Origin: Macrostomum lignano
Taxonomy: Eukaryota
Direction of reading: 5' to 3'
Length of the DNA: 64,000 bases
Assembly (NCBI GenBank): GCA_002269645.1
Contig: NIVC01001187.1
Span: forward strand, 124,001 to 188,000
The notes under the pieces were generated by a model that searched no databases, was not told the origin of the DNA, and saw only the letters and a program-made list of their open reading frames with translations. The translations under genes and the position numbers were made by a program. The stretch's first letter is position 1; each line of letters opens with the position of its first letter. Shown here in pieces: positions 4,134 through 38,951 of this stretch.

Positions 4134-4880
4134 GTTTATTTTTTCTCAACAACGAAATTAAACAGGTTTTGCGAATAAATATGTGAAGTTGGTTATAGGT
4201 AAACAAGAAAAATTGGAAAAATTATTGAACAAATCGATATTGGAGAACACATGAGTTAGTCCGTATGGCAGAGTGAAGTCCGGGGGTGGAAAGAATGTAC
4301 ACCCAGTACTCTCTCTCATCAAAAGACACGGAGTAGGTGACCCGCGCCACTATGTTGGAGTTGTGTGTTTAGGCTGGGTGACTGGGCTTTAATGTGCATG
4401 GCCTCAAGAATTCTAAGTTTGAAGTCCGACTGACATTGGTCAATGATTTTAAAGTGCTCGTTTGGGTTGCAGTTAGAGCAGCTACTACAGTGCAGTAAGT
4501 GATCTTGTATAGCAGACGGTTTGAGCCAGTGCTCCCTGGTTCTGGTGTGTAGGTGTCTTTTGGTTTTCCCCACGTAGGAGACGCTCTGGTCAACAGAGCA
4601 GTTGAATTGATAGACGACACCAGCACGCAGAGCACGGGGAACACGCGACTTTAACCGGCCAACGAAATCACCGACTTTGGCAGTCCAAAAAACAACTATG
4701 ATGTTGCAGTTAAGCGATTGGTGAAACAGTTTCTTGATTTTGCTTTTGAAGTGAAGAGAAGGATGTCCAAAGAAAGGAAGGACAAGAATGGGAATGTCAT
4801 CAAAAATGACCACAAAGACCCCATTCTTCACATATTTATTCGCAAAACCTGTTTAATTTCGTTGTTGAGAAAAAATAAAC

Positions 4881-12520: not shown

Positions 12521-17198
<4,678 letters not shown>

Positions 17199-18062: not shown

Positions 18063-19373
18063 TCAACAGTTGAGGCCGTAGCCCAGGCCGCCCGGAATGG
18101 CGAACGGGAACGGATTGGCCGACAGCAGCTGCGTCAGCGCGTCTGTCCCGCTGGCCGCGGCGGCGACGCCACCGGTCGAGACCGTAGCGGGGCCGGTCAG
18201 GCCGGCGCCGGCGCCAGTCAGAGAGGCCGCGCTGCTGACGGCGCCAGGCGACTGCAGCTGCTGCTGCTGAGCGCGCAAGCGCAGAAAGTCGAAGATCGGC
18301 GGCACCTCGGCGCTGGCGGGCAGGTTCAGCGCCGCCTTGATGGCCTGATCGTCCAGCGGCGGGCAGGCAGCCAGCACGGCCGGGTCCGGCGACAAGGAGC
18401 GGCCCGTCATGGCGGCGATGAGGTGCAGCTGCTGAGTGAGCAGCCAATAGCGACGCCGCTGCTCACCAAGCAGTCCCTGCCCAGCTGGCGCGGCAGCAGC
18501 GGAGGCCGCAGAAGTCGACTGCGAGGAGCTGGGCACAGACAGGCGGCGGCCGGAGCTGCGGACCGGCCGAGGCGACAGCGCGGCGATGGCAGCGGCGGCG
18601 CTGTGCTGATGGTAGTGCTGGTGACCGGCGGCCGCAGTGTGGGCGGCGGCGGCAGCGGCAGCGGCGGCAGCGGCGGCGGCGGCGGAGGGGCTAGTGTCGA
18701 ACTCGCCTGCCAGCTGCGGGGGTGGCGGCGGGAAGGAATGACGCATTCGGCTCGGCGTAGTGTGCCGGCGCTGCTGGATGGCGCTCGGGCTGCCGCGGCT
18801 GACGAGCTCCGATGGCGGGGAGGCGGCGGCAGCAGCGGCAGCGGCTTTCGAGACGATGGGAGACGTGACGGTGCGCGCTGGCACGGCCTCCTCATCGCTC
18901 GGCGTCTGCGTGGCGACTGTGGCAGTGCGTACGGCGCGCGCCTCCTCGGAGCACTTGAGCTCTTCTAGAAGCCGGATGAGGTCCTCCTCCTCCTTGGCGA
19001 TGACTTCCTCGTCCTTCGGTGGCAGCGGCGCGGCATCTTTGGCCTCGGGGCCGAGGATCTTCTTGCGCAGGTAGTTGCGGATGTGCAGCGGCGGGTGGAA
19101 GAACATGTCCAGGTTGATCTCGCGCCGCGCTGTCGGGTCCATGTGCTGGCAGGCGCAATCGCCGTACAGCACGAAGTTCTTGCAGCAGATCACGAGGCCG
19201 GCCGGGAACGACTCGTAGAGAAATCGGGGGTGAAAGATGCGAACGCGCTTGGCCGGGTGGACCAGCATGCAGTCGCCTTTGCAGCCGCTGTTCTCCAGGA
19301 ACTCCTGGCACACCGGGTGCATGTAGGGGCCGTGGATGTAGTGGTTAAACACTTCTCTTGGCAGGTAGGCCAT
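18063..19373 (-). CDS. Intronless Muscleblind-like tandem CCCH zinc-finger protein, divergent, with an Ala/Ser/Pro-rich tail
   Basis: VCQEFLENSGCKGDCMLVHPAKRVRI..LVICCKNFVLYGDC..FFHPPLHIRNYL follows the MBNL pattern CREF..C..C.FAHP..VIAC..C..YLHPP.HL. First ATG at 19373 gives 436 aa. Confidence 0.7.
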   Translation of the reverse strand: MAYLPREVFNHYIHGPYMHPVCQEFLENSGCKGDCMLVHPAKRVRIFHPRFLYESFPAGLVICCKNFVLYGDCACQHMDPTARREINLDMFFHPPLHIRNYLRKKILGPEAKDAAPLPPKDEEVIAKEEEDLIRLLEELKCSEEARAVRTATVATQTPSDEEAVPARTVTSPIVSKAAAAAAAASPPSELVSRGSPSAIQQRRHTTPSRMRHSFPPPPPQLAGEFDTSPSAAAAAAAAAAAAAAHTAAAGHQHYHQHSAAAAIAALSPRPVRSSGRRLSVPSSSQSTSAASAAAAPAGQGLLGEQRRRYWLLTQQLHLIAAMTGRSLSPDPAVLAACPPLDDQAIKAALNLPASAEVPPIFDFLRLRAQQQQLQSPGAVSSAASLTGAGAGLTGPATVSTGGVAAAASGTDALTQLLSANPFPFAIPGGLGYGLNC

Positions 19374-20390: not shown

Positions 20391-21880
20391 TCAGGTAATG
20401 TAGGCCCTGACAGCTCCCAGGATGCGGGATCCGCACTGCGGACAGGCCGAACTCGAGCTCAGGCAGCCGCGGCACAGCAAGAAGTGCGCGCACGGCAGGG
20501 TCACGTGATCCCGGGTGCGCTCTCGGCACAGCAGGCACTTATCACTCTGAGCTGCGACCTCTGCGTCCTCCTCCACGGAGATCTGCGAATGAAAGCCCGG
20601 GTGACCGGACTTCTCTGCAGCCTGCGCTGACTGGGGCTTGGAACTTCTGGCTGCTTGGGCTCGGGATTGAAGGGCTTCTGATTTCTGCTGCTCCAGTGCG
20701 GGTCTCTGCTGCTCCAGTGCGGGTCTCTGCTGCTCCAGTGCGGGTCTCTGCTGCTCCAGTGCGGGTCTCTGCTGCTCCAGTGCGGGTCTCTGCTGCTCCA
20801 GTGCGGGTCTCTGCTGCTCCAGTGCGGGTCTCTGCTGCTCCAGTGCGGGTCTCTGCTGCTCCAGTGCGGGTCTCTGCTGCTCCAGTGCGGGTCTCTGCTG
20901 CTCCAGTGCGGGTCTCTGCTGCTCCATTATGGATCTCTGCTGCTCCAGTGCGGGTCTCTGCTGCTCCAGTGCGGGTCTCTGCTGCTCCAGTGCGGGTCTC
21001 TGCTGCTCCAGTGCGGGTCTCTGCTGCTCCAGTGCGGGTCTCTGCTGCTCCAGTGCGGGTCTCTGCTGCTCCAGTGCGGGTCTCTGCTGCCGCTCCCCTG
21101 ACGCTCCCGACTCGTTCAGCGTTGCGCAGTCGCTCAGCACGGCCTCCACGTCGATCACGTGACCCCAGTCGGGCTGCAGCTCCTCGAACTCGCGGATCAT
21201 CTCGATGAGGTCGCCCGGCCTGCAGGCCAGCTGGCCGCCCCGAGTCATGAAGTGCCGGCAGGCGCAGTACAGCACGCTGCTCCTGGCGAAGCCGAACGAC
21301 TCGACCAGACCGAGCATCGATCTGCGCTCGAGCAGGTCGCTGCTCAGCTTGGCGAGCGCGCGTCTCAGCTTGGCGGAGGTGGCGACGACCCGGTCGTGTC
21401 GCTCGCTCAGCATTCCGTGAGCAACCTTGAGCAGCGTGAGCAGCTCGCACTGCTCGCCTCCCAGCTGCTCGTGAAGCCGCAGCGGCTCGTCGGTCGGGCC
21501 GCCCGGCCGCACCGGAAGCCGGCAGCCGCAGTGGAAGCAGCGAACTGCTCCGGTGGCCGCCTCATCAGCCGGCAGGAAGAGGCCAGCATCCGCCCAGCGA
21601 TACCGGGCCGCCTCATCAGCCAGGAAGGGCGCCGCCGACCGACTGAGCGACCGCAGCCGCGTCGCGTACTCGGCGAAAGCGGGGAACCTGGCGGCGGTGA
21701 CGCAGAACAGCAGGCTGCCTGGAAGGAAAATTGTGTGCTGTTAGTTCCATCGCAGACTTTTGATATTGCAGCAATATTTTTAATGAACACACCACTGAGC
21801 AAGTTACCTCTCGTGTAGAAGCTTGCGCTGTCTGCAAGTGTCAAGCAGAGCTGCTTGCTGAATGCGGAGCTGCCTTCCAT
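20391..21880 (-). CDS. IAP-like copy 1: BIR, UBA-like, 19x heptad linker, RING (type A)
   Basis: Exons 21880-21808 and 21718-20391, phase-1 GTAACT..CCTTCCAG intron. BIR: RLRS..AGLF..CFHC..H..C. UBA-like: ESFGFARSSV..DLIEMI. RING: CLLC..PCAH..C..C..CPQC..AYIT. Confidence 0.9.
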
Positions 21881-21965
21881 TCCGCAGTTTGTGCAGTGGC
21901 GTTTGGTTTCGCTCGTTTCTGCAAAATCTGCAGTGTTTGCAGAGGGGCTGTTTGGATACAAGCAA

Positions 21966-21973
21966 CTTATATA
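21966..21973 (-). promoter_or_regulatory. Candidate TATA box of IAP copy 1
   Basis: TATATAAG ~85 bp upstream of the inferred ATG. Confidence 0.45.
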
Positions 21974-22357
21974 TGCGGGCTAACATCTATATTTACTTAG
22001 TGCTTGGCTAAAAATAGCCCCACCCAAGTGCTTGGACTCTCCGATCGCAAGCACGGGGGCTTCCCGTGTAATTTGCTTGCAGGCCGAAAATAGTCCGAAT
22101 TGCAACTTCCTCATTCTGCAGTACGAGTTGCTGGTCATGTAGAACCCAACTGACTGAGTACAACATGTGCACAAATAGCCAGCTAGAGCCTCAACAAAAG
22201 GAACTTGAAGTTCGCAATCATTGACGTAATCTTTTCATTTTTTAGGTACACTAAATTAGCGATTTTCGATTTTCGATTTCCATTATTTTGAAGTACGAGC
22301 TGAAACCTATTTTAAGCCATTGAATTGTAGGAACAATGAGCTGTGTCATGCATCAGG

Positions 22358-22955
22358 GAATGGATTGCTAATCTAGCCTATCACGGGTGCAGGAATAGAA
22401 TGGATTGCTAATCTAGCCTATCATAGGTGCAGGAATAGAATGGATTGCTAATCTAGCCTATCATGGGTGCAGGAATAGAATGGATTGCTAATCTAGCCTA
22501 TCACGGGTGCAGGAATAGAATGGATTGCTAATCTAGCCTATCATTGATGCAGGAATAGAATGGATTGCTAATCTAGCCTATCATGGATGCAGGAATAGAA
22601 TGGATTGCTAATCTAGCCTATCACGGGTGCAGGAATAGAATGGATTGCTAATCTAGCCTATCACGGGTGCAGGAATAGAATGGATTGCTAATCTAGCCTA
22701 TCATGGATGCAGGAATAGAATGGATTGCTAATCTAGCCTATCACGGATGCAGGAATAGAATGGATTGCTAATCTAGCCTATCACGGGTGCAGGAATAGAA
22801 TGGATTGCTAATCTAGCCTATCACGGGTGCAGGAATAGAATGGATTGCTAATCTAGCCTATCATGGATGCAGGAATAGAATGGATTGCTAATCTAGCCTA
22901 TCACGGGTGCAGGAATAGAATGGATTGCTAATCTAGCCTATCACGGGTGCAGGAA
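22358..22955. repeat. 40-bp minisatellite, ~15 copies
   Basis: Unit GGAATAGAATGGATTGCTAATCTAGCCTATCACGGGTGCA. Confidence 0.95.
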
Positions 22956-23768
22956 TGAAATAGTTTGACTTGTTAAAAGATTCACTCAATTCTGGTTTGC
23001 ACCTTCACCAGACAAGACAAAAACCTGTGCTATCACAATGTCTGTACACTAATTTTCTTAGCTATATGCGAGCATGCATCACTCGTGCGAATTAAAACCA
23101 TCTTTGATGGCGATGTCAACAAGCTTTGACAGGCATCAGAGACTAAGGGCAGAACCCCGTCAATTTTACAAGTTTTGCGGCACAATGCCCGTATCGGGGC
23201 TGGTCGCGAGCCCAGGTCCCTCCTGCTTAGCAACCATTCAATGGAGTAGAATGAGAGGTCTCTAGCTGACTGGCTCAGGACATTCGCCGCCAGTCCTGGA
23301 ACCCAAGTTAAGCAGAGTTGGCCACGGTTAGTACGCTGCTACATAGACTTTTTGCGTCACCCCCTGAAGGCAGACATGCGTGAGTTGAGCTCCAGCTCAC
23401 CAGCTGAGCTGTGGTGACGCGAGAGTTCGAACCCCACACGACATAAACCGGAGCTAAGACAGTCCAAAGCATTGTGTCTTTGAAATAAATCTTTGCACGC
23501 GATTCCAACAACAGAGACGGCAAAATTCAATCAGTTTTTAAAAACCCATTAGGCAGTAATGCAATGCTGGGAAGTTGTAAAATACGAGTATATTACGAGG
23601 TATTATGGCTATTGAGCTGAGTAAACTCTCTAGTTAAAGCTAAGAGACATTCGTACTTTAGCCCTGGATTAAGTGGAAATGTCGATCAAACAAGTCATTG
23701 GACAGTAAAATACACCCCACAGCCGCAGTACTGAGCGCAACGGAATAAAAACAGGGCAGCAACGCCAT

Positions 23769-25024
23769 TCAGGCGATAAACGCCCTCAAAGATGCCAGGA
23801 TGCGGCCACCGCACTGTGGACAGTCTGTTCTAGAGCTGACGCAGCCGTGGCACAGGAGGAAGTGTGCGCATGGCAGGGTCACGTGATCCCGGGTGCGCTC
23901 TCGGCACAGCAGACACTTCTCTGAGCAGCCGCCGAGCTCCTTGGGCTTCAGCTGATCAGCGTCGGGAGAAACTGACGGCTGCCGAGCAACACCAACTAGT
24001 GAGCTTGCACCGACTGTGGCTGCCCGGCACATCGCCACCGCCCCCTGCTGCTCCAGTGCGGGTCTCTGCTGCTCCAGTGCGGGTCTCTGCTGCTCCAGTG
24101 CGGGTCTCTGCTGCTCCAGTGCGGGTCTCTGCTGCTCCAGTGCGGATCTCTGCTGCTCCAGTGCGGGTCTCTGCTGCTCCAGTGCGGGTCTCTGCTGCTC
24201 CAGTGCGGGTCTCTGCTGCCGCTCCCCTGACGCTCCCGACTCGTTCAGCGTTGCGCAGTCGCTCAGCACGGCCTCCACGTCGATCACGTGACCCCAGTCG
24301 GGCTGCAGCTCCTCGAACTCGCGGATCATCTCGATGAGGTCGCCCGGCCTGCAGGCCAGCTGGCCGCCCCGAGTCATGAAGTGCCGGCAGGCGCAGTACA
24401 GCACGCTGCTCCTGGCGAAGCCGAACGACTCGACCAGACCGAGCATCGATCTGCGCTCGAGCAGGTCGCTGCTCAGCTTGGCGAGCGCGCGTCTCAGCTT
24501 GGCGGAGGTGGCGACGACCCGGTCGTGTCGCTCGCTGAGCATTCCGTGAGCAACCTTGAGCAGCGTGAGCAGCTCGCACTGCTCGCCTCCCAGCTGCTCG
24601 TGAAGCCGCAGCGGCTCGTCGGTCGGGCCGTCCGGCCGCACCGGAAGCCGGCAGCCGCAGTGGAAGCAGCGAACTGCTCCGGTGGCCGCCTCATCAGCCG
24701 GCAGGAAGAGGCCAGCATCCGCCCAGCGACACCGGGCCGCCTCATCAGCCAGGAAGGGCGCCGCCGACCGACTGAGCGACCGCAGCCGCGTCGCGTACTC
24801 GGCGAAAGCGGGGAACCTGGCGGCGGTGACGGAGAACAGCAGGCTGCCTGGAAGGTCGGTGAGGGAGCAGTGGTTGAGCATTCTCAGCCTATTGACAGGA
24901 AAATCATAGGGCAAGTCAGCCAGCAGTGCAGAGAGGTCTCACCCAGCGCATATTCAGAGTTCCGAGTTCCGAGCTGGCGCAAATTTTGCGCAGTCCGCTG
25001 GCCGAAGACGCCATTGCGCTGCAT
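23769..25024 (-). CDS. IAP-like copy 2: BIR, UBA-like, 8x heptad linker, RING (type B)
   Basis: Exons 25024-24943 and 24847-23769, phase-1 GTGAGA..CCTTCCAG intron. Different linker end and RING (..CHGCVSSRTDCPQCGGRILASLRAFIA). TATAAG at 25094-25099. Confidence 0.9.
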
Positions 25025-25754
25025 CCACAGCCTGGCACTGACGCAAGCTTCTGCTGCTGCTGGCCACTCTGTGCTCTGTGCAAGGCTTGGCAGCTTATAA
25101 GCGCTGCTTGCAAACCGGTTTAGGTTCCAAGTTAAGCATTTGTAGATAACTTTGCCAAGAGACGAAAGTATATTAGGGGATCTCTCACGTACCCCGTAGC
25201 CAGTTATTTCAGTGGAGTGGAAATTTCTATTTTTAACTCTGAGTCTCAGTCTCAGAATGAGTCTCAGAATGCCATGCCCAGTGTACATTGGATGTACATT
25301 TAGAGTGCGCGGCTGGACTAGTTTGAAAGCGGTTTCTGTGAAGCAGCGCAACGCCCTCTAAAAGTAATTTTCTTTGAATGCAATTGCTTCATTGCCCTTC
25401 AAATATATATTTAAAATTTATGGATATGAAAATGTCGTAAATATGCTTTGTAAAATAATCTAACAGATATAAGAGAATACCATTGATTATTCAAAATTAA
25501 CATTTAGTATTTCACTAGCTATTTAGCCCCCCCCCTTTGGGGGGCCTTAAAAATGACACCAAATTGCCATGAATCAAAACTTTCATCAAGAAAGTTTCTT
25601 TCATCAACCCAAAACCCTTTCTCAATCAGCAAATAGTGCTTATCCTTTCAAGCACAAACTCTTAGTGCATATTGTCACTGGCCGGGGCATATTCTGGTCT
25701 ACAGCAGGAGCTCACGGCCTTATACCTCTCTTTATTAGCCTAACTCAAAGAATC

Positions 25755-26360
25755 CCCCAGACAGCAAGCATCCCCCAGACAGCATGCATCCCCCAGACAG
25801 CAAGCATCAGCAAGCATCGCCCAGACAGCAAGCATCAGCAAGCATCCCCCAGACAGCATGCATCCCCCAGACAGCAAGCATCAGCAAGCATCGCCCAGAC
25901 AGCAAGCATCAGCAAGCATCCCCCAGACAGCATGCATCCCCCAGACAGCAAGCATCAGCAAGCATCCTCCAGACAGCATGCATCCCCCAGACAGCAAGCA
26001 TCAGCAAGCATCCCCCAGACAGCATGCATCCCCCAGACAGCAAGCATCAGCAAGCATCCCCCAGACAGCATGCATCCCCCAGACAGCAAGCATCAGCAAG
26101 CATCGCCCAGACAGCAAGCATCAGCAAGCATCCCCCAGACAGCAAGCATCAGCAAGCATCGCCCAGACAGCAAGCATCAGCAAGCATCCCCCAGACAGCA
26201 TGCATCCCCCAGACAGCAAGCATCAGCAAGCATCCCCCAGACAGCAAGCATCAGCAAGCATCGCCCAGACAGCAAGCATCAGCAAGCATCCCCCAGACAG
26301 CATGCATCCCCCAGACAGCAAGCATCAGCAAGCATCCCCCAGACAGCAAGCGTCCCCCAA
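25755..26360. repeat. Complex minisatellite built from CCCCCAGACAGC(A/T)(A/G)GCAT and CAGCAAGCAT modules
   Basis: Modular periodic sequence; all three plus-strand frames open only because the unit lacks stops. Confidence 0.9.
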
Positions 26361-26371
26361 ACCAAGCATAT

Positions 26372-27556
26372 GCTGGGCACTGATATTGAGGAAAAAATTG
26401 CCACAATACGGCACCTATGTACCATTAAACTACTGCCTTTCTGTAGTTTGGAAAGCCCACTCATTAAAATTCATGTGCCTATCTTTGCTGTGTATGGCAC
26501 TATATGTTTCGGTAAACTTTAAAACAAAATATTTTATTCTGGTAGAGTAGCTCGCTTAATAAATAGGAATAAAATGAATGAGAGAACAAACATTAACTCG
26601 TTTTTATTTACTTTAATTCAATTGCCAATGCATTTCGACCCTTGTAGGTCATCGTCAGGGCAGTAGTGAAATTGAAAATTGTAATAAACAGTTGAATAAA
26701 TATACCTGTGATAACTTGAATACACAATATAAATTATTGTACGTAGTTTTCAATCGACACAAGTTAACACACGGTGCAGTAGCGTACACTCCAAGCTAAA
26801 ACACGCTGAGTTGGCGGCTGGCACCCCCCATAGCTAGCTGGCAGTTTAGGCTCGGGTTCTGATCTTTGATGTACATAGAGCACACTTTGAATATCTTAGA
26901 GGGCTATGTCTGCCTGCCAGCGCACCATGCTGAGTTTGGCCAAAATCTTTTGCGCGCCGTGGTTGCTTACAACAGCCACCACATTTAATCCCGGTAACTC
27001 GGTTTTCTGCTTTAAAAGAAATGGCAGTGGTTGTTAGTCTCACAGTAAAGTAGTATTCAAAGGACCCTATAAATTTAAAATACTAAACTTTTTGCAAGCT
27101 CCCGTACTGTAGAAAGCTTTCATACTTTTGCTACTTTATATGCTAATACGAGCAATACCTTGCAATATTATTGCAGAAATGCATGTAGTTCTGGTTAATA
27201 TTTGAGGAACTTGCTACACAAAAAGAATATAGTTATTTTGAAATTTTTCTATAAAACCCATGCTGTTTCCGAGTATTTAAATGTAAACAATTTGTAATGT
27301 TATTTAACTTACTAAATCACAAGCTTGTAATCTTGTACTCTTTTTGTACAAGTATACATTGAGTCTGCCACTTGCTAAGAATTTCTGCTTGTCTTATTAA
27401 CGAGAGCAATTAACGAGAGCAATTGTACACAGATTGTACACAAAGATAGGCACATGAATTTTAATGAGTGGGCTTTCTGAACTACAGAAAGGCAGTAGTT
27501 TAATGGTACATAGGTGCCGTCTTGTGGCAATTTTTTCCCCAATATCAGTTCCCAGC
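26372..27556. mobile_element. Element bounded by 116-bp imperfect inverted repeats, containing a hammerhead ribozyme
   Basis: 26372-26487 is the reverse complement of 27441-27556 (GCTGGGCACTGATATTG.. / ..CAATATCAGTTCCCAGC). Confidence 0.65.
26623..26662 (-). ncRNA. Minimal type-I hammerhead ribozyme
   Basis: Minus strand reads TGCC-CTGACGA-T-GACC-TACAAG-GGTC-GAAA-TGC-ATT-GGCA. Helix I TGCC/GGCA, helix II GACC/GGTC, palindromic helix III ATGCAT. Confidence 0.75.
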
Positions 27557-27930
27557 CTAACCTTTGGTAAGTGAAGTCAGTCCCTTACTGTCTAAAATAC
27601 TTAGATTAGCTTTTTTGACTTCAAAAATGTATTTATTTTTAACTGACTGTTTATTAAAAATATTCTAGTTATCGATAATTTTCAGCTTCAAGAACAGTTG
27701 GAAGCCAAGAGAAGGCATGAAGGTCACGCGAACATGGCACTAACATATAATAGCAAAACTTATCTCGGAATTCACCCAGTGGCTAAATTTGGAACCAGAA
27801 ACCCCCAAGGCCACTTGAGTGCAGCACTGACGTAGGCGTACGTTAATTTATTACGTTGTGCATCAGATGCAACCAGTGAGCCATTACTCACATGCTAAAT
27901 ATAGACTGCAAAGTACATGGCCTGTCCACG

Positions 27931-27949
27931 CCAATAGAACACTATAAAA
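27931..27949 (+). promoter_or_regulatory. CCAAT and TATA motifs of IAP copy 3 (mirrored at 34698-34716 for copy 4)
   Basis: CCAAT at 27931 and TATAAAA at 27943, ~75 bp before the ATG at 28023. Confidence 0.55.
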
Positions 27950-28022
27950 GCACTGCTAGATGTAGGGCTAGCATGGACCAACCAAACAGGCCGCATTCGC
28001 AGCACCCACTGCCAGTCCTGAC

Positions 28023-29383
28023 ATGCCGGCATTCAGCAAAGTCACCGAGGACAAAATACACTCGGCCAGATCGCCCTACAGACTGGGTAAGCAGAGCTGT
28101 CCGCTCTCTTTTACTACTGAAATTTACTCTGCCGTGATGTTAAAAAATTGCTCAACCACTGCTCCCTCACCCACCTTCCAGGCAGCCTGCTGTTCTGCGT
28201 CACCGCCGCCAGGTTCCCCGCTTTCGCCGAGTACGCGACGCGGCTGCGGTCGCTCAGTCGGTCGGCGGCGCCCTTCCTGGCTGATGAGGCGACCCGGTGT
28301 CGCTGGGCGGATGCTGGCCTCTTCCTGCCAGCTGATGAGGCGGCCACTGGAGCAGTTCGCTGCTTCCACTGCGGCTGCCGGCTTCCGGTGCGGCCGGACG
28401 GCCCGACCGACGAGCCGCTGCGGCTTCACGAGCAGCCGGGAGGCGAGCAGTGCGAGCTGCTCACGCTGCTCAAGGTTGCTCACGGAATGCTGAGCGAGCG
28501 ACACGACCGGGTCGTCGCCACCTCCGCCAAGCTGAGACGCGCGCTCGCCAAGCTGAGCAGCGACCTGCTCGAGCGCAGATCGATGCTCGGTCTGGTCGAG
28601 TCGTTCGGCTTCGCCAGGAGCAGCGTGCTGTACTGCGCCTGCCGGCACTTCATGACTCGGGGCGGCCAGCTGGCCTGCAGGCCGGGCGACCTCATCGAGA
28701 TGATCCGCGAGTTCGAGGAGCTGCAGCCCGACTGGGGTCACGTGATCGACGTGGAGGCCGTGCTGAGCGACTGCGCGACGCTGAACGAGTCGGGAGCGTC
28801 AGGGGAACGGCGGCAGAGACCCGCACTGGAGCAGCAGAGACCCGCACTGGAGCAGCAGAGACCCGCACTGGAGCAGCAGAGACCCGCACTGGAGCAGCAG
28901 AGACCCGCACTGGAGCAGCAGAGACCCGCACTGGAGCAGCAGAGACCCGCACTGGAGCAGCAGAGACCCGCACTGGAGCAGCAGAGACCCGCACTGGAGC
29001 AGCAGAGACCCGCACTGGAGCAGCAGAGACCCGCACTGGAGCAGCAGAGACCCGCACTGGAGCAGCAGAGACCCGCACTGGAGCAGCAGAAATCAGAAGC
29101 CCTTCAATCCCGAGCCCAAGCAGCCAGAAGTTCCAAGCCCCAGTCAGCGCATGCTGCAGAGAAGTCCGGTCACCTGGGCTTTCATTCGCAGATCTCCGTG
29201 GAGGAGGACGCAGAGGTCGCAGCTCAGAGTGATAAGTGCCTGCTGTGCCGAGAGCGCACCCGGGATCACGTGACCCTGCCGTGCGCGCACTTCTTGCTGT
29301 GCCGCGGCTGCCTGAGCTCGAGTTCGGCCTGTCCGCAGTGCGGATCCCGCATCCTGGGAGCCGTCAGGGCCTACATTACCTGA
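28023..29383 (+). CDS. IAP-like copy 3: BIR, UBA-like, 13x heptad linker, RING (type A)
   Basis: Exons 28023-28086 and 28182-29383, phase-1 GTAAGC..CCTTCCAG intron; same domain motifs as copy 1. Confidence 0.9.
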
Positions 29384-30804
29384 GCCATTTTGCTACGACT
29401 TTGAAACGCCTTTGTTGGTTCCGGCAGCACATTTTCTAGGATTTCGCGAAGAATTTTCGACTCAACTTTCATGGACGACTCAGGTTGGACTCAAAATGGC
29501 AGTTCTTGCTTGATTTTTCGACTTAAATTTTGATCTACCGGCTGGCTTGAAGTTTGACTGTCGGTCTTTTGCCACAATTGAGTTCTTGGTTGTTTATCTA
29601 GCCTTTCTCTCCGCCTTCAAAGTCTTCAATGCTCTATTGTTTTACTATAATGCGGATAAAGAATAACTGCGTTTTACTTCGATAAAACTTATATTTAAGC
29701 TTTTTATTATGTTTTATAGATTAGTTAGCTTCGTCAAGACTCAAGACGTTAATTGGTTTGTTAAAATGCGCTCTATGAAATATTTTGTACTGTTATTTAT
29801 TATTAACAATAAATAAACCGGTCGTATGAACGAAATTCCAAGTGACTTCTCGAGGGCTTTTCTCAGAGTTTTTGGTGCCCAAAATTTGGTGGGATTTCAT
29901 TGTCGTCTATGCCGTTTAGGAGTATTTAGGACAATGACCTGTGGGCCTATTTCGAGCTCTCAATGAGCTTTTATGCTCCTTACGATACCGAAATATTGTC
30001 CTAAAAATATGAGCAGTCTGGGATCAGCCGCTATCAGGCATGAGGGAGAAACAAATGTTGTGCCTTCGCCTGCAGCTCTGCAGTCTCTGACCCTCATCTC
30101 CGCTCCCCTTCTCTCCCTCCCTGCAGCCTCTGAACCTCATCTCCGCTCCTCTTCCCTCCCTGCAGCCTCTGACCCTCATCTCCCTTTCACTTAGTTTTGT
30201 ATAAATTCTGCACACAATCATCATCGCAACAATATACTAAATCTCTTAGATCTGTCTGACCGATATTTCAGTATGCAGCCTGAATGCCTGAACCGATTTT
30301 TTTCAAACTTGCTGTATTGAATTGGAAATTCTTGTGAGATTGTGTGGGTGTAATTGCATTAAAAAAATAGAACGGGAAGATGGTTAAATATTCGAAAAAC
30401 TGTATTTTCCCCATCTAATTAGTGTATTTTTTTCGCAGTGAGGGCTCAATATGTCTTTGGCCATAGACTAAACTTCAGCTTCTTGGGCTGATGCTACGAG
30501 CTATAAATAATTAAATACGAGTATTCGAAAACATGCTTTTTTGCATAAGGGAGAGATATCAGCCAGTGCACTTTAAAAGTATTGAATTATTGCGCAACTT
30601 TTTTTAATTTTTTTTTTAATTTTTTTTTATTGCGCAACTGTGTATAGGCCTCACTGCTATATATCACTCACTGTGTATATCACTGCTATGTATTTGACTG
30701 CAGTGCCGAAGCATATATGGCTGATGCTAAAAATGGTCTGTCGGTGTGTGCCCCGGTGGGTGCTTGCTACGTCTGTTGGATGCTTGCTGTTTGGCGCCAC
30801 TATA

Positions 30805-31438
30805 CACTCAGCAACATTTAAAACGCAACACTCTAACTAGAAGAAAAATCAACTCACTCAGAAGAGTCAAAGCGCATAGTCTATGGTTCAAATAGAGCTT
30901 CAGAAACGCGTGTAGCCTCCTCTCGCAAGTAACAGGGCGATGACTATGGACTGTTTTCAGATAGAATGATCCAGCTGAGAGAATGGTTCAACAGATGACA
31001 GACGCGGAAAGATGGCGAGCAGTCGGAATGTTGGAAGCAGGTTGTACTCTTCGAACAACAGCAGTTGTACTGCGAAGTTGGTGAAGCACCGTACCTTTTC
31101 TCGCGTGAGCCACGCTTCCAGTGGCTCTGCTCTTCTGTAGCAGACGTAAAACTGTTGAAGGCGACCTCCCGAAGTGGTTCGCAACTGTTCGAAGAGTACA
31201 ACCTGCTTCCAACATTCCGACTGCTCGCCATCTTTCCGCGTCTGTCATCTGTTGAACCATTCTCTCAGCTGGATCATTCTATCTGAAAACAGTCCATAGT
31301 CATCGCCCTGTTACTTGCGAGAGGAGGCTACACGCGTTTCTGAAGCTCGATTTGAACCATAGACTATGCGCTTTGACTCTTCTGAGTGAGTTGATTTTTC
31401 TTCTAGTTAGAGTGTTGCGTTTTAAATGTTGCTGAGTG
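30805..31438. mobile_element. Tc1-like transposon 5' end, present in inverted duplicate at the palindrome centre
   Basis: TA|CACTCAGCAAC ends on both sides. ORF 31260 leftwards reads MTDAERWRAVGMLEAGCTLRTVANHFGRSPSTVLRLLQKSRATGSV, a Tc1 N-terminal HTH. No DDE domain. Confidence 0.85.
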
Positions 31439-31877
31439 TATAGCAGTGAGGCCTATACACAGTTGCGCAATACTTCAATACTTTTAAAGTGCACTGGCTG
31501 ATATCTTTCCCTTATGCAAAAAGCATGTTTTCGAATGTATTCGTATTTAATTATTTATAGCTCGTAGCATCAGCTCAAGAAGCTGAAGTTTAGTCTATGG
31601 CCAAAGACATATTGAGCCCTCACTGCGAAAAATACACTAATTAGATGGGGAAAATACAGTTTTTCGAATATTTAACCATCTTCCCATTCTAATTTTTTAA
31701 TGCAATTACACCCACACAATCTCACAAGAATTTCCAATTCAATACAGCAAGTTTGAAAAAAATCGGTTCAGGCATTCAGGCTGAATACTGAAATACCGGT
31801 CAGACAGATCTAAGAGATTTAAAATATTGTTTTGTGATGATGATTGTGTGCAGAATTTATTCAAAACTAAGTGAAAG

Positions 31878-32630
31878 GGAGATGAGGGTCAGAGGCTGCA
31901 GGGAGGGAGAGAAGGGGAGCGGAGATGAGGTTCAGAGGCTGCAGGGAGGGAGAGAAGGGGAGCGGAGATGAGGTTCAGAGGCTGCAGGGAGGGAGGGAAG
32001 GGGAGCGGAGATGAGGGTCAGAGGCTGCAGGGAGGGAGAGAAGGGGAGCGGAGATGAGGTTCAGAGGCTGCAGGGAGGGAGAGAAGGGGAGCGGAGATGA
32101 GGTTCAGAGGCTGCAGGGAGGGAGAGAAGGGGAGCGGAGATGAGGGTCAGAGGCTGCAGGGAGGGAGGGAAGGGGAGCGGAGATGAGGGTCAGAGGCTGC
32201 AGGGAGGGAGAGAAGGGGAGCGGAGATGAGGGTCAGAGGCTGCAGGGAGGGAGAGAAGGGGAGCGGAGATGAGGTTCAGAGGCTGCAGGGAGGGAGAGAA
32301 GGGGAGCGGAGATGAGGGTCAGAGGCTGCAGGGAGGGAGGGAAGGGGAGCGGAGATGAGGGTCAGAGGCTGCAGGGAGGGAGAGAAGGGGAGCGGAGATG
32401 AGGGTCAGAGGCTGCAGGGAGGGAGAGAAGGGGAGCGGAGATGAGGGTCAGAGGCTGCAGGGAGGGAGAGAAGGGGAGCGGAGATGAGGGTCAGAGGCTG
32501 CAGGGAGGGAGAGAAGGGGAGCGGAGATGAGGTTCAGAGGCTGCAGGGAGGGAGGGAAGGGGAGCGGAGATGAGGTTCAGAGGCTGCAGGGAGGGAGAGA
32601 AGGGGAGCGGAGATGAGGGTCAGAGACTGC
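31878..32630. repeat. 43-bp minisatellite, ~17 copies (only ~2.5 copies in the mirror arm at ~30085-30190)
   Basis: Unit GAGGTTCAGAGGCTGCAGGGAGGGAGAGAAGGGGAGCGGAGAT. Confidence 0.95.
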
Positions 32631-33326
32631 AGAGCTGCAGGCGAAGGCACAACATTTGTTTCTCCCTCATGCCTGATAGCGGCTGATCCCAGACTGCTCA
32701 TATTTTTAGGACAATACTTCGGTATCATAAGGAGCATAAAAGCTCATTGAGAGCTCGAAATAGGCCCACAGGTCATTGTCCTAAATACTCCTAAACGGCA
32801 TAGCCGACAATGAAATCCCACCAAATTTTGGGCACCAAAAACTCTGAGAAAAGCCCTCGAGAAGTCACTTGGAATTTCGTTCATACGACCGGTTTATTTA
32901 TTGTTGATAATAAATAACAGTACAAAATATTTCATAGAGCGCATTTTAACAAACCAATTAACGTCTTGAGTCTTGACGAAGCTAACTAATCTATAAAACA
33001 TAATAAAAAGCTTAAATATAAGTTTTATCTAAGTAAAACGCAGTTATTCTTTATACGCATTATAGTAAAACAATTGAGCATTGAAGACTTTGAAGGCGGA
33101 GAGAAAGGCTAGATAAACAACCAAGAACTCAATTGTGGAAAAAGACCGACAGTCAAACTTCAAGCCAGCCGGTAGATCAAAATTTAAGTAAAAAAATCAA
33201 GCAAGAACTGCCATTTTGAGTCCAACCTGAGTCGTCCATGAAAGTTGAGTCGAAAATTCTTCGCGAAATCCTAGAAAATGCGCTGCCGGAACCAACAAAG
33301 GCGTTTCAAAGTTGCAGCAAAATGGC

Positions 33327-34624
33327 TCAGGTAATGTAGGCCCTGACAGCTCCCAGGATGCGGGATCCGCACTGCGGACAGGCCGAACTCGAGCTCAGGC
33401 AGCCGCGGCACAGCAAGAAGTGCGCGCACGGCAGGGTCACGTGATCCCGGGTGCGCTCTCGGCACAGCAGGCACTTATCACTCTGAGCTGCGACCTCTGC
33501 GTCCTCCTCCACGGAGATCTGCGAATGAAAGCCCGGGTGACCGGACTTCTCTGCAGCCTGCGCTGACTGGGGCTTGGAACTTCTGGCTGCTTGGGCTCGG
33601 GATTGAAGGGCTTCTGATTTCTGCTGCTCCAATGTGGGCCTCTGCTGTTCCATTGTGGGTCTCTGCTGCTGCAGTGCGGGTCTCTGCTGCTCCAATGTGG
33701 GCCTCTGCTGCTCCAGTGCGGGTCTCTGCTGCTCCAGTGCGGGTCTCTGCTGCTCCAGTGCGGGTCTCTGCTGCTCCAGTGCGGGTCTCTGCTGCTCCAG
33801 TGCGGGTCTCTGCTGCTCCAGTGCGGGTCTCTGCTGCCGCTCCCCTGACGCTCCCGACTCGTTCAGCGTCGCGCAGTCGCTCAGCACGGCCTCCACGTCG
33901 ATCACGTGACCCCAGTCGGGCTGCAGCTCCTCGAACTCGCGGATCATCTCGATGAGGTCGCCCGGCCTGCAGGCCAGCTGGCCGCCCCGAGTCATGAAGT
34001 GCCGGCAGGCGCAGTACAGCACGCTGCTCCTGGCGAAGCCGAACGACTCGACCAGACCGAGCATCGATCTGCGCTCGAGCAGGTCGCTGCTCAGCTTGGC
34101 GAGCGCGCGTCTCAGCTTGGCGGAGGTGGCGACGACCCGGTCGTGTCGCTCGCTCAGCATTCCGTGAGCAACCTTGAGCAGCGTGAGCAGCTCGCACTGC
34201 TCGCCTCCCGGCTGCTCGTGAAGCCGCAGCGGCTCGTCGGTCGGGCCGTCCGGCCGCATCGGAAGCCGGCAGCCGCAGTGGAAGCAGCGAACTGCTCCGG
34301 TGGCCGCCTCATCAGCCGGCAGGAAGAGGCCAGCATCCGCCCAGCGACACCGGGCCGCCTCATCAGCCAGGAAGGGCGCCGCCGACCGACTGAGCGACCG
34401 CAGCCGCGTCGCGTACTCGGCGAAGGCGGGGAACCTGGCGGCGGTGACGCAGAACAGCAGGCTGCCTGGAAGGTCGGTGAGGGAGCAGTGGTTGAGCAAT
34501 TTTTTAACATCACAGCAGAGTAAATTTCAGTAGTAAAAGAGAGCGGACAGCTCTGCTTACCCAGTCTGTAGGGCGATCTGGCCGAGTGTATTTTGTCCTC
34601 GGTGACTTTGCTGAATGCCGGCAT
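33327..34624 (-). CDS. IAP-like copy 4: BIR, UBA-like, 10x heptad linker, RING (type A)
   Basis: Exons 34624-34561 and 34465-33327; mirror of copy 3 in the palindrome. Confidence 0.9.
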
Positions 34625-35284
34625 GTCAGGACTGGCAGTGGTTGCTGTGAATACGGCCTGTTTGGTTGGTCCATGCTAGCCCTACATCTAGCAGTGCTTT
34701 TATAGTGTTCTATTGGCGTGGACAGGCCATGTACTTTGCAGTCTATATTTAGCATGTGAGTAATGGCTCACTGGTTGTGTCTGATGCACAACGTAATGAA
34801 TTAACGTACGCAATTAATACGCCAGTTCTGCACTCAAGTGGCCTTGGGGGTTTCTGGTTCCAAATTTAGCCACTGGGTGAATTCCGAGATAAGTTTTGCT
34901 ATTATATGTTAGTGCCATGTTCGCGTGACCTTCATGCCTTCTCTTGGCTTCCAACTGTTCTTGAAGCTGAAAATTATCGATAACTAGAATATTTTTAATA
35001 AACAGTCAGTTAAAAATAAATACATTTTTGAAGTCAAAAAAGCTGATCTAAGTATTTTAGACAGTAAGGGACTGACTGCCTGTCTGCAATGTGCAATTTC
35101 ATTTCATGTTCATGAATTTTTGAAACAAATGCAACCCATTGAGTTCGCGGGTACGCTGCGGAGTTCAGCGAACACTGAACCCTTAAATCTAGATTTAGTG
35201 TAGACTGAAGTCCAAAGTACTGAGAGATAAACATTGCGCCCAGAGTTCGCATAAGTCTATTGATACAAAGTACTGACGCCTGAC

Positions 35285-35828
35285 ACCAGGTAGATCAGAG
35301 CCGTAGGCTAATGGCACTGCAGGTAGATCAGATCCGTAAGCTAATGACACTGCAGGTAGATCAGATCCGTAAGCTAATGACACTGCAGGTAGATCAACTG
35401 TAGGCTAATGACACTGCAGGTAGATCAGCTGTAGGCTAATGACACTGCAGGTAGATCAACTGTAGGCTAATGAAACTGCAGGTAGATCAGCTGTAGGCTA
35501 ATGAAACTGCAGGTAGATCAGCTGTAGGCTAATGAAACTGCAGGTAGATCAACTGTAGGCTAATGACACTGCAGGTAGATCAACTGTAGGCTAATGACAC
35601 TGCAGGTAGATCAACTGTAGGCTAATGACACTGCAGGTAGATCAACTGTAGGCTAATGGCACTGCAGGTAGATCAACTGTAGGCTAATGACACTGCAGGT
35701 AAATCAACTGTAGGCTAATGAAACTGCAGGTAGATCAGCTGTAGGCTAATGAAACTGCAGGTAGATCAACTGTAGGCTAATGACACTGCAGGTAGATCAG
35801 CTGTAGGCTAATGGCACTGCAGGTAGAT
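35285..35828. repeat. 31-bp minisatellite, ~17 copies
   Basis: Unit GTAGGCTAATGACACTGCAGGTAGATCAACT. Confidence 0.95.
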
Positions 35829-36100
35829 GCTCGGTCTTGTCGAGACGTTCAGCTTCGTCAGCTATTGAAAACTGAAAAAATAATCTATAAAGCGATAGCC
35901 AAACTTGACGCACTTGATAGCAACCGAAAGTGGCCCAGCAGACCAAAGGTCACAGTGCAGTGCATTCTTGCCCAAAAATAACTGTGAACCAGAGGACTGC
36001 AGCACAATACTTTATTAGCCTAGCCCAAGCTTTATTCTAAAACCTGTTTAGCTCTCGAGCGAAGCACTGCATCTGCTGGAACTGAGCCTACCGATCCCCG

Positions 36101-37817
36101 ATGCACAGCTGCCGGCTACTTGGAGCCAAGGTTGCCGCGAGACTGCAGCCCGGAACAGCCTACGTGAGCAGTAAGTGAGCAAGCAAAGACCCCCCCATCT
36201 TGTCGGAGTTGGCCTAAACCTGCCGAGCTGATTGACCTCCTTCCAGGCGGCCTGCTGTTCTCCGTCACCGCCGCCAGGTTCCCCGCCTTCGCCGAGTACG
36301 CGACGCGGCTGCGGTCGCTCAGTCGGTCGGCGGCGCCCTTCCTGGCTGATGAGGCGGCCCGGTGTCGCTGGGCGGATGCTGGCCTCTTCCTGCCGGCTGA
36401 TGAGGCGGCCACCGGAGCAGTTCGCTGCTTCCACTGCGGCTGCCGGCTTCCGGTGCGGCCGGGCGGCCCGACCGACGAGCCGCTGCGGCTTCACGAGCAA
36501 CTGGGAGGCGAGCAGTGCGAGCTGCTCACGCTGCTCAAGGTTGCTCACGGAATGCTGAGCGAGCGACACGACCGGGTCGTCGCCACCTCCGCCAAGCTGA
36601 GACGCGCGCTCGCCAAGCTGAGCAGCGACCTGCTCGAGCGCAGATCGATGCTCGGTCTGGTCGAGTCGTTCGGCTTCGCCAGGAGCAGCGTGCTGTACTG
36701 CGCCTGCCGGCACTTCATGACTCGGGGCGGCCAGCTGGCCTGCAGGCCAGGCGACCTCATCGAGATGATCCGCGAGTTCGAGGAGCTGCAGCCCGACTGG
36801 GGTCACGTGATCGACGTGGAGGCCGTGCTGAGCGACTGCGCGACGCTGAACGAGTCGGGAGCGTCAGGGGAAAGGCGGCAGAGACCCGCACTGGAGCAGC
36901 AGAGACCCGCACTGGAGCAGCAGAGACCCGCACTGGAGCAGCAGAGACCCGCACTGGAGCAGCAGAGACCCGCACTGGTGCAGCAGAGACCCGCACTGGA
37001 GCAGCAGAGACCCCCACTGGAGCAGCAGAGACCCGCACTGGAGCGGCAGAGACCCGCACTGGAGCAGCAGAGACCCACAATGGAACAGCAGAGACCCGCA
37101 CTGGAACAGCAGAGACCCGAACTGGAGCAGCAGAGACCCGCACTGGAGCAGCAGAGACCCGCACTGGAGCAGCAGAGACCCGCACTGGAGCAGCAGAGAC
37201 CCACAATGGAACAGCAGAGACCCGCACTGGAACAGCAGAGACCCCCACTGGAGCAGCAGAGACCTCCACTGGAGCAGCAGAGACCCGCACTGGAGCAGCA
37301 GAGACCCATAATGGAGCAGCAGAGACCCGCACTGGAGCAGCAGAGACCCATAATGGAGCAGCAGAGACCCGCACTGGAGCAGCAGAGACCCGCACTGGAG
37401 CAGCAGAGACCCATAATGGAGCAGCAGAGACCCGCACTGGAGCAGCAGAGACCCACAATGGAACAGCAGAGACCCGCACTGGAACAGCAGAGACCCGCAC
37501 TGGAGCAGCAGAGACCCACAATGGAACAGAAGAGACCCGCACTGGAACAGCAGAGACCCCCACTGGAGCAGCAGAGACCCCCACTGGAGCAGCAGAGACC
37601 CGCACTGGAGCAGCAGAGACAGTCCGCATCAGCCTGTTCCATCAGCAAGAATTCAGTTGCATCAGACAGGTGCACGGGTTGCTGGCAAAGTGCCAAGAGC
37701 CAGGTAACCCTGCCCTGCGCGCACCTGCTGCTGTGTGCTGACTGCCTTCAAGCTCGGTCCCGCTGCCCCAGCTGTGGGGTACGAATCTTGGCCTCCGTTC
37801 GGGCCTATCTCGTTTGA
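36101..37817 (+). CDS. IAP-like copy 5: BIR, UBA-like, ~35x heptad linker, RING (type C)
   Basis: Exons 36101-36170 and 36247-37817, phase-1 GTAAGT..CCTTCCAG intron. RING: CTGCWQSAKSQVTLPCAHLLLCADCLQARSRCPSCGVRILASVRAYLV. Confidence 0.9.
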
Positions 37818-38149
37818 GGCGAGCTCAGTGATTGCCAGCAGCACCTGTGGCCCTTACCCTTCCCATGTCTTTCATGTTTGAACCTAAAAAAATAAGTTTG
37901 AAAAGTCACATCAACAGTCATTGCGATCCTTCTTTTTTCAAGTTGTATTTGTTTGAACATTCACTTGATATTCAAGCGCCGAAAACCCCGCCGCAGGCTG
38001 ACGACGTTGAGTCTGAAAAATGCGAATTGAGTGGCTGAGCTGACTCGCACTGCTGATCTGATCTGTTGGATTAATATTGCAAGCTTCTGACTAGTTCGAA
38101 ATAAAACATATTCAGCGATATGCTCGCTTTTTCACGCTTCTGCTTAGCT

Positions 38150-38412
38150 CTCCCTAGCAACCCATCTCCCTAGCAACCCATCTCCCTAGCAACCCATCTC
38201 CCTAGCAACCCATCTCCCTAGCAACCCATCTCCCTAGCAACCCATCTCCCTAGTAACCCATCTCCCTAGCAACCCATCTCCCTAGCAACCCATCTCCCTA
38301 GCAACCCATCTCCCTAGCAACCCATCTCCCTAGCAACCCATCTCCCTAGCAACCCATCTCCCTAGCAACCCATCTCCCTAGCAACCCATCTCCCTAGCAA
38401 CCCATCTCCCTA
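38150..38412. repeat. 16-bp minisatellite (CTCCCTAGCAACCCAT)n
   Basis: ~16 copies. Confidence 0.95.
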
Positions 38413-38423
38413 GTAATGTGATC

Positions 38424-38951
38424 TCACTCACTCAGCTGGTGTCCCGGCCTGGCCTTCCTGGATCCAACATGCAGCTCACAGAAATGGGGGCTGTTGTTAA
38501 AATCGCAAACGCAGGTGCCCTCCATCAGCTGCCTTTTCAGATAGGCCTTGCTGTGCTCTGGCGTGTTCTGAGCAGCCGAGAGCCGCTGGCAGCGGCCTCC
38601 GGTTGTGTCTGGCGACTGCCCGAGTGGGCAGGGGTTGGGCGGGTCGCACTGCCTCAGGCACGGGCGGTTCCTGGCTCCAGCGGGCAACGGCGGCAGCGTC
38701 ACGGCCGAGTTCATCGGCCGCGGCTCCGCGGGCTTCCCAAGGCTCGCCAGCTGCTGCCACAGCCGGTCGGTGGCCGCGGCCTGAGCCTCCTTGGACAGCG
38801 CAGCTTCAGTCCAGTTGGCCACCTGCACCAGCCGGCGGAACTGAGCCTGCAGACGGTCCAGGAGGTCCTCTTGATAGGCGGGCCGGCCGCGCAGCGACTG
38901 CGGCAGCAGCAGCAGCAAAATTAGCAGCGAGGTTCTCTTCAACAGCGGCAT
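38424..38951 (-). CDS. SCG5: Neuroendocrine protein 7B2-like secreted protein
   Basis: Signal peptide (LLILLLLLPQSLRG). CDPPNPCPLG contains the 7B2 hallmark PPNPCP, followed by C..NTPEHSKAY..CVCD..HFC. The 3' end may be spliced (GTGAGT at 38431). Confidence 0.75.
   Translation of the reverse strand: MPLLKRTSLLILLLLLPQSLRGRPAYQEDLLDRLQAQFRRLVQVANWTEAALSKEAQAAATDRLWQQLASLGKPAEPRPMNSAVTLPPLPAGARNRPCLRQCDPPNPCPLGQSPDTTGGRCQRLSAAQNTPEHSKAYLKRQLMEGTCVCDFNNSPHFCELHVGSRKARPGHQLSE

Follow-up and report, generated by a model that had tools for sequence, protein, structure and literature searches.

Does a cluster of near-identical genes in the genome of the free-living flatworm Macrostomum lignano assemble its proteins from interchangeable modules, or is it a tandem gene family in which one segment has been kept alike by exchange between copies? 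The question is raised by a stretch of 64,000 nucleotides, here called the window (NIVC01001187.1:124001-188000, assembly Mlig_3_7, GCA_002269645.1), whose positions 20391-37817 carry five paralogous genes resembling those for ubiquitin ligases of the IAP family; the stretch 17987-39383 was matched identically to the contig. The explanation that accounts best for the data, and that we consider probable as a whole, is that the locus represents a tandem family, specific to this lineage, of genes for ubiquitin ligases with a single BIR-like domain and a C-terminal RING, divergent relatives of the IAPs. The near-identical middle and drifted ends of these genes most likely represent a real and fairly ordinary pattern of gene conversion, not a designed mix-and-match.

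Gene Models of the Array

Six-frame open reading frames (ORFs) and in-frame translations define five intact two-exon genes, c1 to c5, at the places and in the orientations (- - + - +) proposed by an earlier reading made without database searches (the sequence-only reading). They are designated by type of first exon (N1 to N4) and of RING end (A to C):

20391-21880, minus strand: c1 (N1-A, MEGSS...), exon 1 21880-21808, intron 21719-21807, exon 2 21718-20391; 466 amino acids
23769-25024, minus strand: c2 (N2-B, MQRNG...), exon 1 25024-24943, exon 2 24847-23769; 386 amino acids
28023-29383, plus strand: c3 (N3-A, MPAFS...), exon 1 28023-28086, exon 2 28182-29383; 421 amino acids
33327-34624, minus strand: c4 (N3-A, MPAFS...; inverted duplicate of c3), exon 1 34624-34561, exon 2 34465-33327; 400 amino acids
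36101-37817, plus strand: c5 (N4-C, MHSCR...), exon 1 36101-36170, exon 2 36247-37817; 546 amino acids

All five large exons are open from a common acceptor, CCTTCCAG/GC, through to the stop codon, and each is preceded by a short ATG exon with a GT[AG]A donor and an intron of 76-95 nucleotides, the donors being of phase 1 as the exon-2 acceptor requires. The bounds of c1 coincide exactly with a GenBank gene call (L002 2405-3894, offset 17986), while the c3 model, from its first methionine on, shows no difference from GenBank protein P0019 (BOX15_Mlig030874g1). The exon junction of the c2 type is present in the transcript-derived proteins PAA84649.1 and PAA78111.1 of two sister contigs. The GenBank annotation of this assembly rests on RNA-seq and transcriptome assemblies (PMC5730564); in this contig it contains no entry for c4, and no transcript from the contig confirms the exon-1 donor of c5, for which an older WormBase-type model (P0012) uses a donor 6 nucleotides further upstream and has no ATG. 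The GenBank product of c1 has 452 amino acids against 466 in the genomic model, and the gap of 14 residues equals two 21-bp repeat units; this points to a mapped transcript from an allele whose array is shorter, the difference having been annotated as a 42-nucleotide "intron."

Two other interpretations of the exon structure were rejected. In a list of ORFs, c1 and c5 begin at an internal GTG and might pass for truncated pseudogenes; no stop codon, however, interrupts their frames upstream as far as the acceptor. Trans-splicing of a spliced leader at the shared acceptor was likewise discarded, as the leader ATG is out of frame with the BIR and annotated transcripts are cis-spliced from exon 1. 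The exon-2 acceptors, TTCCAG in each case (21718, 24847, 28182, 34465, and 36247), do match the trans-splice acceptor motif reported for M. lignano ([T/C]TNCAG), where the spliced leader ends in ATG (PMC8629364). Placed at the acceptor, that ATG would open another frame that is free of stops for about 108 codons (MAACCSASPPPGSP...), probably a chance effect of 70% GC. Over the GC-rich core and the repeats, long ORFs also occur in other frames or on the other strand; they were put down to composition and periodicity.

Segmental Divergence Among the Copies

The second exons consist of three parts: a core of 626 nucleotides (208 codons, from the start of exon 2) encoding the BIR-like CCHC domain, a helical linker and a small three-helix domain; an in-frame minisatellite of 21 bp encoding QQRPALE (Tandem Repeats Finder); and the RING with its stop codon (49 codons). 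Their positions are as follows:

21093-21718, minus strand: core of c1
24222-24847, minus strand: core of c2
28182-28807, plus strand: core of c3
33840-34465, minus strand: core of c4
36247-36872, plus strand: core of c5
20684-21090, minus strand: QQRPALE array of c1, 19.4 units
24045-24219: QQRPALE array of c2, 8.3 units
28813-29090: QQRPALE array of c3, 13.2 units
33620-33837: QQRPALE array of c4, 10.4 units
36878-37620: QQRPALE array of c5, 35.4 units
20391-20540, minus strand: RING of c1, type A
23769-23918, minus strand: RING of c2, type B
29234-29383, plus strand: RING of c3, type A
33327-33476, minus strand: RING of c4, type A
37668-37817, plus strand: RING of c5, type C

All ten pairs of cores are 98.4-99.4% identical, and synonymous divergence (dS, Nei-Gojobori) is only 0.006-0.038. 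By the same method the RINGs give a dS of 0.43-0.48 between types A and B, and type C is saturated, with a proportion of synonymous differences (pS) of 0.75-0.81. Tails of type A (c1, c3, c4) are 99-100% identical, that of c1 matching c4 at 294 of 294 positions, while B (c2) is 66% identical to A, and C (c5) stands at about 50%. The three RING types can be aligned with one another and none has lost a zinc ligand; because the ligands are intact and the ratio of nonsynonymous to synonymous divergence (dN/dS) is about 0.3 for A versus B, all three are probably functional. The GC content at third codon positions (GC3) is 0.87 in the core versus 0.63-0.69 in the tails. Outside exon 2, similarity between copies in upstream DNA, exon 1, intron, and downstream DNA is at the level of shuffled controls, c3 and c4 being the exception.

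The first exons fall into four types, MEGSS, MQRNG, MPAFS (twice), and MHSCR. All have 64-82 nucleotides and a phase-1 donor, and a Tyr-x-x-Gly(-x-Leu) motif that is invariant in distant members of the family is rebuilt across the splice junction in each of the four types. By these shared features the four are best regarded as old, diverged homologues and not as unrelated modules. The repeat array varies in length not only among the window copies but also in the sister contigs, where 4 to 20 units are found. The heptad array matches designed coiled-coil peptides and DUF5892/HmpF weakly, but these matches were judged compositional and a coiled-coil nature was set aside; with a proline in every heptad a coiled coil is unlikely.

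Much of what had been read from the letters was thus borne out: a near-identical segment of some 210 codons, three RING ends with A in copies 1, 3, and 4, and linkers of varying length (8.3-35.4 units). Its expectation of near-zero dS in the core only, and of discordance between segments, agrees with the values above and with the conflicting groupings that exon 1 and RING give for c1. Four N-terminal types do exist, as claimed, but the description of them as dissimilar has to be replaced by one of diverged homologues sharing phase, length, and motif.

Domain Identity of the Proteins

The RING is recognized by Pfam zf-C3HC4_3 in all three types (33-38 bits, cut-off 27). Its closest solved relatives are the RINGs of CGRRF1, cIAP1, cIAP2, and XIAP, and the alignment to the last three extends to the final residue with identical ligand spacing; profile and alignment comparison therefore confirms it as an IAP-type C-terminal RING.

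The BIR is less readily recognized. Pfam did not report it on the full-length window proteins, which curated signatures do not class as BIR-containing IAPs. By homology it can be identified: the zinc ligands C, C, H, C are invariant across the family alignment, and the family profile matches solved BIRs of BIRC8 (2e-5), XIAP BIR3 (6e-5), survivin (1e-4), and NAIP (2e-7). One relative, P0021, exceeds the Pfam BIR cut-off with 36 bits, and three others (P0005, P0015, and P0004) reach 20-22 bits. When the AlphaFold model was compared with the PDB by Foldseek, almost all of the top 26 matches were BIR structures, the best being cIAP1 (3t6p, E 0.23), although none was significant. We conclude that the CCHC domain is a genuine, highly divergent BIR. 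Canonical binding of IAP-binding-motif (IBM) peptides is doubtful, because the two positions that hold groove tryptophans in cIAP1 BIR3 are occupied by other residues here.

The segment following the BIR had been called UBA-like. Pfam matched no UBA in the window proteins, nor in any of seven relatives, and none was found among the PDB profile matches. The segment is modelled as a small helical bundle with a predicted local distance difference test score (pLDDT) of 82, for which Foldseek returned three matches only, all with E > 4, one of them the UBA of USP13. Its order of elements (helix, G-F loop, helix, helix) would allow a UBA without proving one, and neither Pfam nor the PDB profile search nor, at a significant level, Foldseek backs the label. 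Of the BIR-UBA-RING architecture claimed at first, the RING accordingly holds by Pfam and the BIR at profile level only, while the UBA was not confirmed.

A HMMER/phmmer search with the core over 1.84 billion representatives recovered a small family, all from M. lignano, together with an XIAP-like protein of a wasp (E 9e-4). The suspicion that the system is lineage-specific is upheld by this search.

Sister Contigs and Evidence for Exchange Between Copies

Three versions of the locus, all from the one assembly, were available for comparison: the window contig, NIVC01000365.1 (L001 and L004), and NIVC01000707.1 (L003). NIVC01000365.1 carries N1-A(-), N2-B(-), N3-A(+), and N4-C(+), and NIVC01000707.1 the identical four-gene set. 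Gene order, orientation, and the pairings of N terminus and RING are identical in all three separately assembled versions, and the array is bordered in each by the same two genes (18063-19373 and 37972-38951, both on the minus strand). With unique flanks and a presence in all three contigs, the four genes are not assembly artefacts. The orthologue of c5 is intact in L003; in NIVC01000365.1 (L001 9697-10846) it has a deletion of 1 nucleotide in a G run (CCGGGCGG to CCGGCGG) that shifts the frame of the BIR, because of which the GenBank protein P0001 (281 amino acids) begins at an internal methionine. This frameshift is either a real pseudogene mutation or a PacBio indel error.

Exchange was examined in 12 sequences of the 626-nucleotide core from the three contigs, which offer 9 informative sites only. 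Positional orthologues differ at 0-10 of 626 nucleotides and paralogues at 3-10, with no clustering of orthologues, despite the fact that in the 500 nucleotides upstream of exon 2 orthologues are 96.9-100% identical and paralogues cannot be aligned. Exchange would therefore have taken place after the versions of the locus split, since core orthologues are no closer than paralogues although their flanks are 97-100% identical. Core variants are shared by non-orthologous copies (at site 41, for example, C occurs in W_c4, W_c5, X_c3, and Y_c3), and all four gametes are present at 17 of 36 pairs of informative sites. The near-identical tract extends 8 nucleotides (c1, c5) or 33 nucleotides (c2, c3, c4) into the intron at its 5' end; at the 3' end it stops within the 21-bp minisatellite or, for c1 versus c3/c4, 1-2 nucleotides past the stop codon. 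The locus in this way displays the hallmarks of concerted evolution, namely a tract far more similar than its flanks at synonymous sites as well, orthologues no closer than paralogues, and recombinant pairs of sites. The contrast in dS and the mosaic of variants are most likely the signature of conversion, both between paralogues and between the duplicated locus versions, and the high GC3 of the core fits GC-biased conversion.

Copy 4 and the Possibility of an Assembly Artefact

The fifth gene, c4, is absent from both sister contigs. Relative to these, the window contains an extra block (about 30800-35077) made up of a Tc1-like remnant and an inverted copy of 27575-30599, c3 and c4 lying in the two arms of an inverted duplication with the remnant exactly at its centre:

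27575-30599, plus strand: left arm, carries c3
31461-35077, minus strand: right arm, carries c4; identity to the left arm about 97-98%, repeat counts different
30800-31443, no strand assigned: Tc1/mariner-like remnant with terminal inverted repeats of 258 nucleotides (30800-31057 and 31186-31443), 100% complementary
30988-31260: ORF of 90 amino acids in the remnant with a helix-turn-helix (HTH_38, E 4e-9)

The remnant is missing from NIVC01000365 at the corresponding point, and the arm with c4 has no consistent closest contig. As a separate observation, a 43-bp minisatellite is present in 17.6 copies in the right arm (31878-32632) versus 2.6 in the left (39-bp period, 30078-30183), and NIVC01000365 carries its long form.

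Copy 4 may be genuine, the product of an inverted duplication, or it may be a haplotype that was joined in reverse, and its status leads to the most serious challenge to the array as described, namely that part of it is an assembly artefact: the right arm (31461-35077) would be a haplotype or homeologue joined in reverse, or the identity of the cores would stem from consensus polishing across copies. More than half of the M. lignano genome is repetitive, and 180 Mb of the assembly lie in blocks at least 95% identical, a known redundancy (PMC5730564) that exists because the sequenced line has duplicated chromosomes. In keeping with such an origin, besides the lack of c4 elsewhere, the arms differ by about 2-3%, as much as the contigs do among themselves, and the downstream flank of c4 is 99.1% identical to NIVC01000707 versus 98.1% to its own left arm. 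The junction, however, is not a bare fold-back but has a centre of about 860 nucleotides with the Tc1-like element, the arms differ in repeat numbers and by many substitutions, each core has private variants, and the remaining four genes, with their unique flanks, are found in three contigs. An artefact affecting part of the array is on balance unlikely, though it cannot be called negligible.

Alternative Explanations for the Constant Core

The idea put forward from the letters alone was that the locus mixes modules combinatorially. In its full form it would be a selected system in which a constant recognition module is shuffled onto interchangeable N termini, spacers, and RINGs, so that one target meets with different outputs, for instance, as a speculation, in immunity or cell death. 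The constant core with diverged ends is real, spacer length varies widely, the different RINGs are probably functional by their A-B dN/dS of about 0.3 and retained zinc ligands, and the A tail of c1 is joined to an exon 1 other than that of c3 and c4. Against this stand four fixed pairings, the same in three versions of the locus, with no new combination seen among copies or haplotypes; since the pairings are fixed, there is no sign of combinatorial mixing. First exons and RINGs are diverged homologues and not foreign modules, and the boundaries coincide with the loss of homology as mechanical conversion predicts. We regard a selected shuffling system as improbable. The pattern that had prompted it, a homogenised recognition half with diverged ends, stands as an observation; a selective cause is not needed to account for it, since conversion does so. 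A bolder variant would have selection, beyond the mechanics of exchange, hold one BIR-like module constant across distinct RINGs and variable proline-containing heptad spacers, and would have RING-IAPs retained or re-invented in Platyhelminthes, from which their loss has been reported. This is quite unlikely; if it held, a single target, perhaps a ligand linked to cell death or stem cells or one derived from a pathogen, would be met with several ubiquitination outputs.

Repeated exchange must also be set against a single recent replacement, by which one exon-2 sequence was copied once into older, diverged genes and has been too young to diverge since. Such an event would agree with the uniformly low divergence of the core and with the match of c1 to c4 over the whole of exon 2 through the stop codon. 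It accounts less well for variants shared in mosaic fashion across paralogues and contigs, pairs of sites with four gametes, or core orthologues no nearer to each other than paralogues between closely similar flanks, and the 5' end points vary by pair (8 versus 33 nucleotides into the intron). A single replacement fits less well than repeated exchange, and we give it little credence. Purifying selection without exchange is scarcely credible: the core does encode conserved domains, but such selection is insufficient because core dS is near zero while the equally coding RINGs have a dS of at least 0.43, and identity continues 8-33 nucleotides into the intron. A mobile element carrying the core was rejected, since no copy of the core was seen outside the three locus versions.

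Several points nevertheless weigh against an array of divergent IAP genes homogenised by conversion. The isolated BIR scores 15.6 bits with Pfam PF00653 (E 0.024) versus a cut-off of 22.9, the AlphaFold model reaches only a modest pLDDT (61 overall, 70-80 over the BIR-like domain), and no Foldseek match of the core model has E < 0.001. Conversion events were not directly observed, and the core has few informative sites with which to trace them. The three versions of the locus share a single source, a PacBio-based assembly of one inbred, partly duplicated line, in which short-read polishing across near-identical copies could inflate similarity or create shared variants. For c4 and c5, expression of the individual copy cannot be demonstrated. 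The step to protein function, finally, is a prediction from sequence.

Proposed History of the Locus

Repeated conversion, the explanation preferred here, allows the following history to be sketched. Old whole-gene duplications would have produced the four genes N1-A, N2-B, N3-A, and N4-C, whose first exons, introns, flanks, and RING tails then diverged to or near saturation. Repeated non-reciprocal exchange, both between copies and between the locus versions of this neopolyploid genome, would have kept 626 nucleotides about 99% identical, with conversion tracts stopping where homology runs out. Exon 1 may escape homogenisation because it is short and separated by an intron, and the RINGs, lying beyond a repeat of variable length, would have largely separate histories. 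The minisatellite does vary in length in frame, through slippage or unequal exchange, which gives a proline-containing heptad spacer of 4-35 units. The fifth gene, c4, would have arisen in this contig only, by inverted duplication of the c3 segment beside the Tc1-like element. Each protein is probably a RING ubiquitin ligase (E3), its C-terminal RING predicted to recruit a ubiquitin-conjugating enzyme (E2) and its BIR-like and helical domains to bind a partner. A common core would give the paralogues one binding specificity as a consequence of conversion.

Other Features of the Window

Of the two genes bordering the array, that at 18063-19373 is annotated as a poly-Ala-rich protein of 436 amino acids with Cys/His clusters and no Pfam match, and that at 37972-38951 as a protein of 186 amino acids that begins with a signal-peptide-like N terminus and weakly matches 7B2/secretogranin V (E 5e-4). 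Dense minisatellites (units of 8-74 bp, arrays to 2.7 kb) occupy most intergenic space, including 12839-13279, 15419-17013, 22358-22956, 25762-26351, 35287-35828, 38149-38413, and 50187-52899, and several yield long spurious ORFs in many frames. Elsewhere in the window the following ORFs were recognized:

1693-2391, minus strand: C2H2 zinc finger
4319-4831, minus strand: weak GIY-YIG match; may belong to a Penelope-like element
59375-60658, minus strand: DnaJ domain, with a weak thioredoxin-like part
62653-63195, minus strand: RING (zf-RING_2)

Significance and Comparison with Known Systems

The locus as it stands reveals no new kind of molecular system. What it offers is an undescribed, Macrostomum-restricted BIR-like/RING family and a clean, small case of segmental concerted evolution, bounded by an intron on one side and a coding minisatellite on the other, in a neopolyploid setting that lets exchange between paralogues be compared with exchange between duplicated chromosomes. 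There is also a practical consequence, in that short-read expression data and knock-down reagents cannot separate the copies unless aimed at exon 1 or the RING tail. A metazoan survey of 2026 reported the loss of RING-IAPs in Platyhelminthes, using RefSeq species only and standard BIR signatures, with Macrostomum not included (PMC13159474). Because of that species set and those signatures the present family would be missed, and its existence qualifies the claim; families of this kind are invisible to domain-based censuses because their BIR is too divergent for standard signatures.

Literature searches with these gene identifiers, or with Macrostomum and IAP, returned nothing relevant. Other members in M. 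lignano are Mlig002214 (P0013), Mlig014265 (P0004), Mlig010893 (P0021), and Mlig009914 (P0005). They have the N-terminal Y-x-x-G-x-L...TA motif, the CCHC domain, the long helix, and the F/Y-G-F/Y helical domain in common with the window proteins, and some the same RING, but they are only 25-42% identical to the window core, are dispersed on other contigs, and in several cases lack a RING. None has the QQRPALE array, although P0013 has a poly-Q tract. A further relative, P0015 (UniRef A0A1I8IKD2), is a model of 593 amino acids that looks like two fused neighbours (BIR-like-RING, then helical domain-RING), which suggests further tandem pairs of the family in M. lignano.

By architecture, the nearest known proteins are the single-BIR RING IAPs ML-IAP (BIRC7) and ILP-2 (BIRC8) and the C-terminal half of XIAP (BIR3-UBA-RING), all with one CCHC BIR, helices, and a C-terminal zf-C3HC4_3 RING; among single BIRs, that of BIRC8 gives the best profile match, followed by XIAP BIR3. 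With cIAP1 the window RINGs share the ligand spacing C-x2-C-x11-C-x-H-x3-C-x2-C-x6-C-x2-C and an aromatic residue at -3 from the C terminus. The window proteins differ from the single-BIR RING IAPs in a BIR that falls under the Pfam cut-off, an unconfirmed UBA, and a heptad minisatellite spacer ahead of the RING. Their BIR spacing is C-x2-C-x18-H-x7-C in place of x16 and x6, and in alignment with cIAP1 BIR3 the two groove tryptophans are replaced.

By evolutionary behaviour, the closest parallels are the tandem IAP expansions of bivalves and the Naip arrays of rodents. The expansions in oysters and the hard clam are species-specific, largely tandem, and variable in domain make-up (PMC8917759, PMC7831173), and the M. 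lignano array is likewise a species-specific tandem amplification of BIR and RING genes; bivalve IAPs, however, keep canonical BIRs and are described as diversifying, whereas here the BIR half is homogenised. In the rodent Naip (Birc1) arrays, conversion has evened out both coding and intronic sequence and has obscured orthology; the 5' promoter regions, by contrast, differ between copies (PMC1781489). Naip proteins are NOD-like receptors (NLRs) with three BIRs and no RING, unlike the window proteins, and identity between Naip copies is about 90% across the whole gene, whereas in M. lignano a tract of 626 nucleotides is held at about 99% between abrupt edges.

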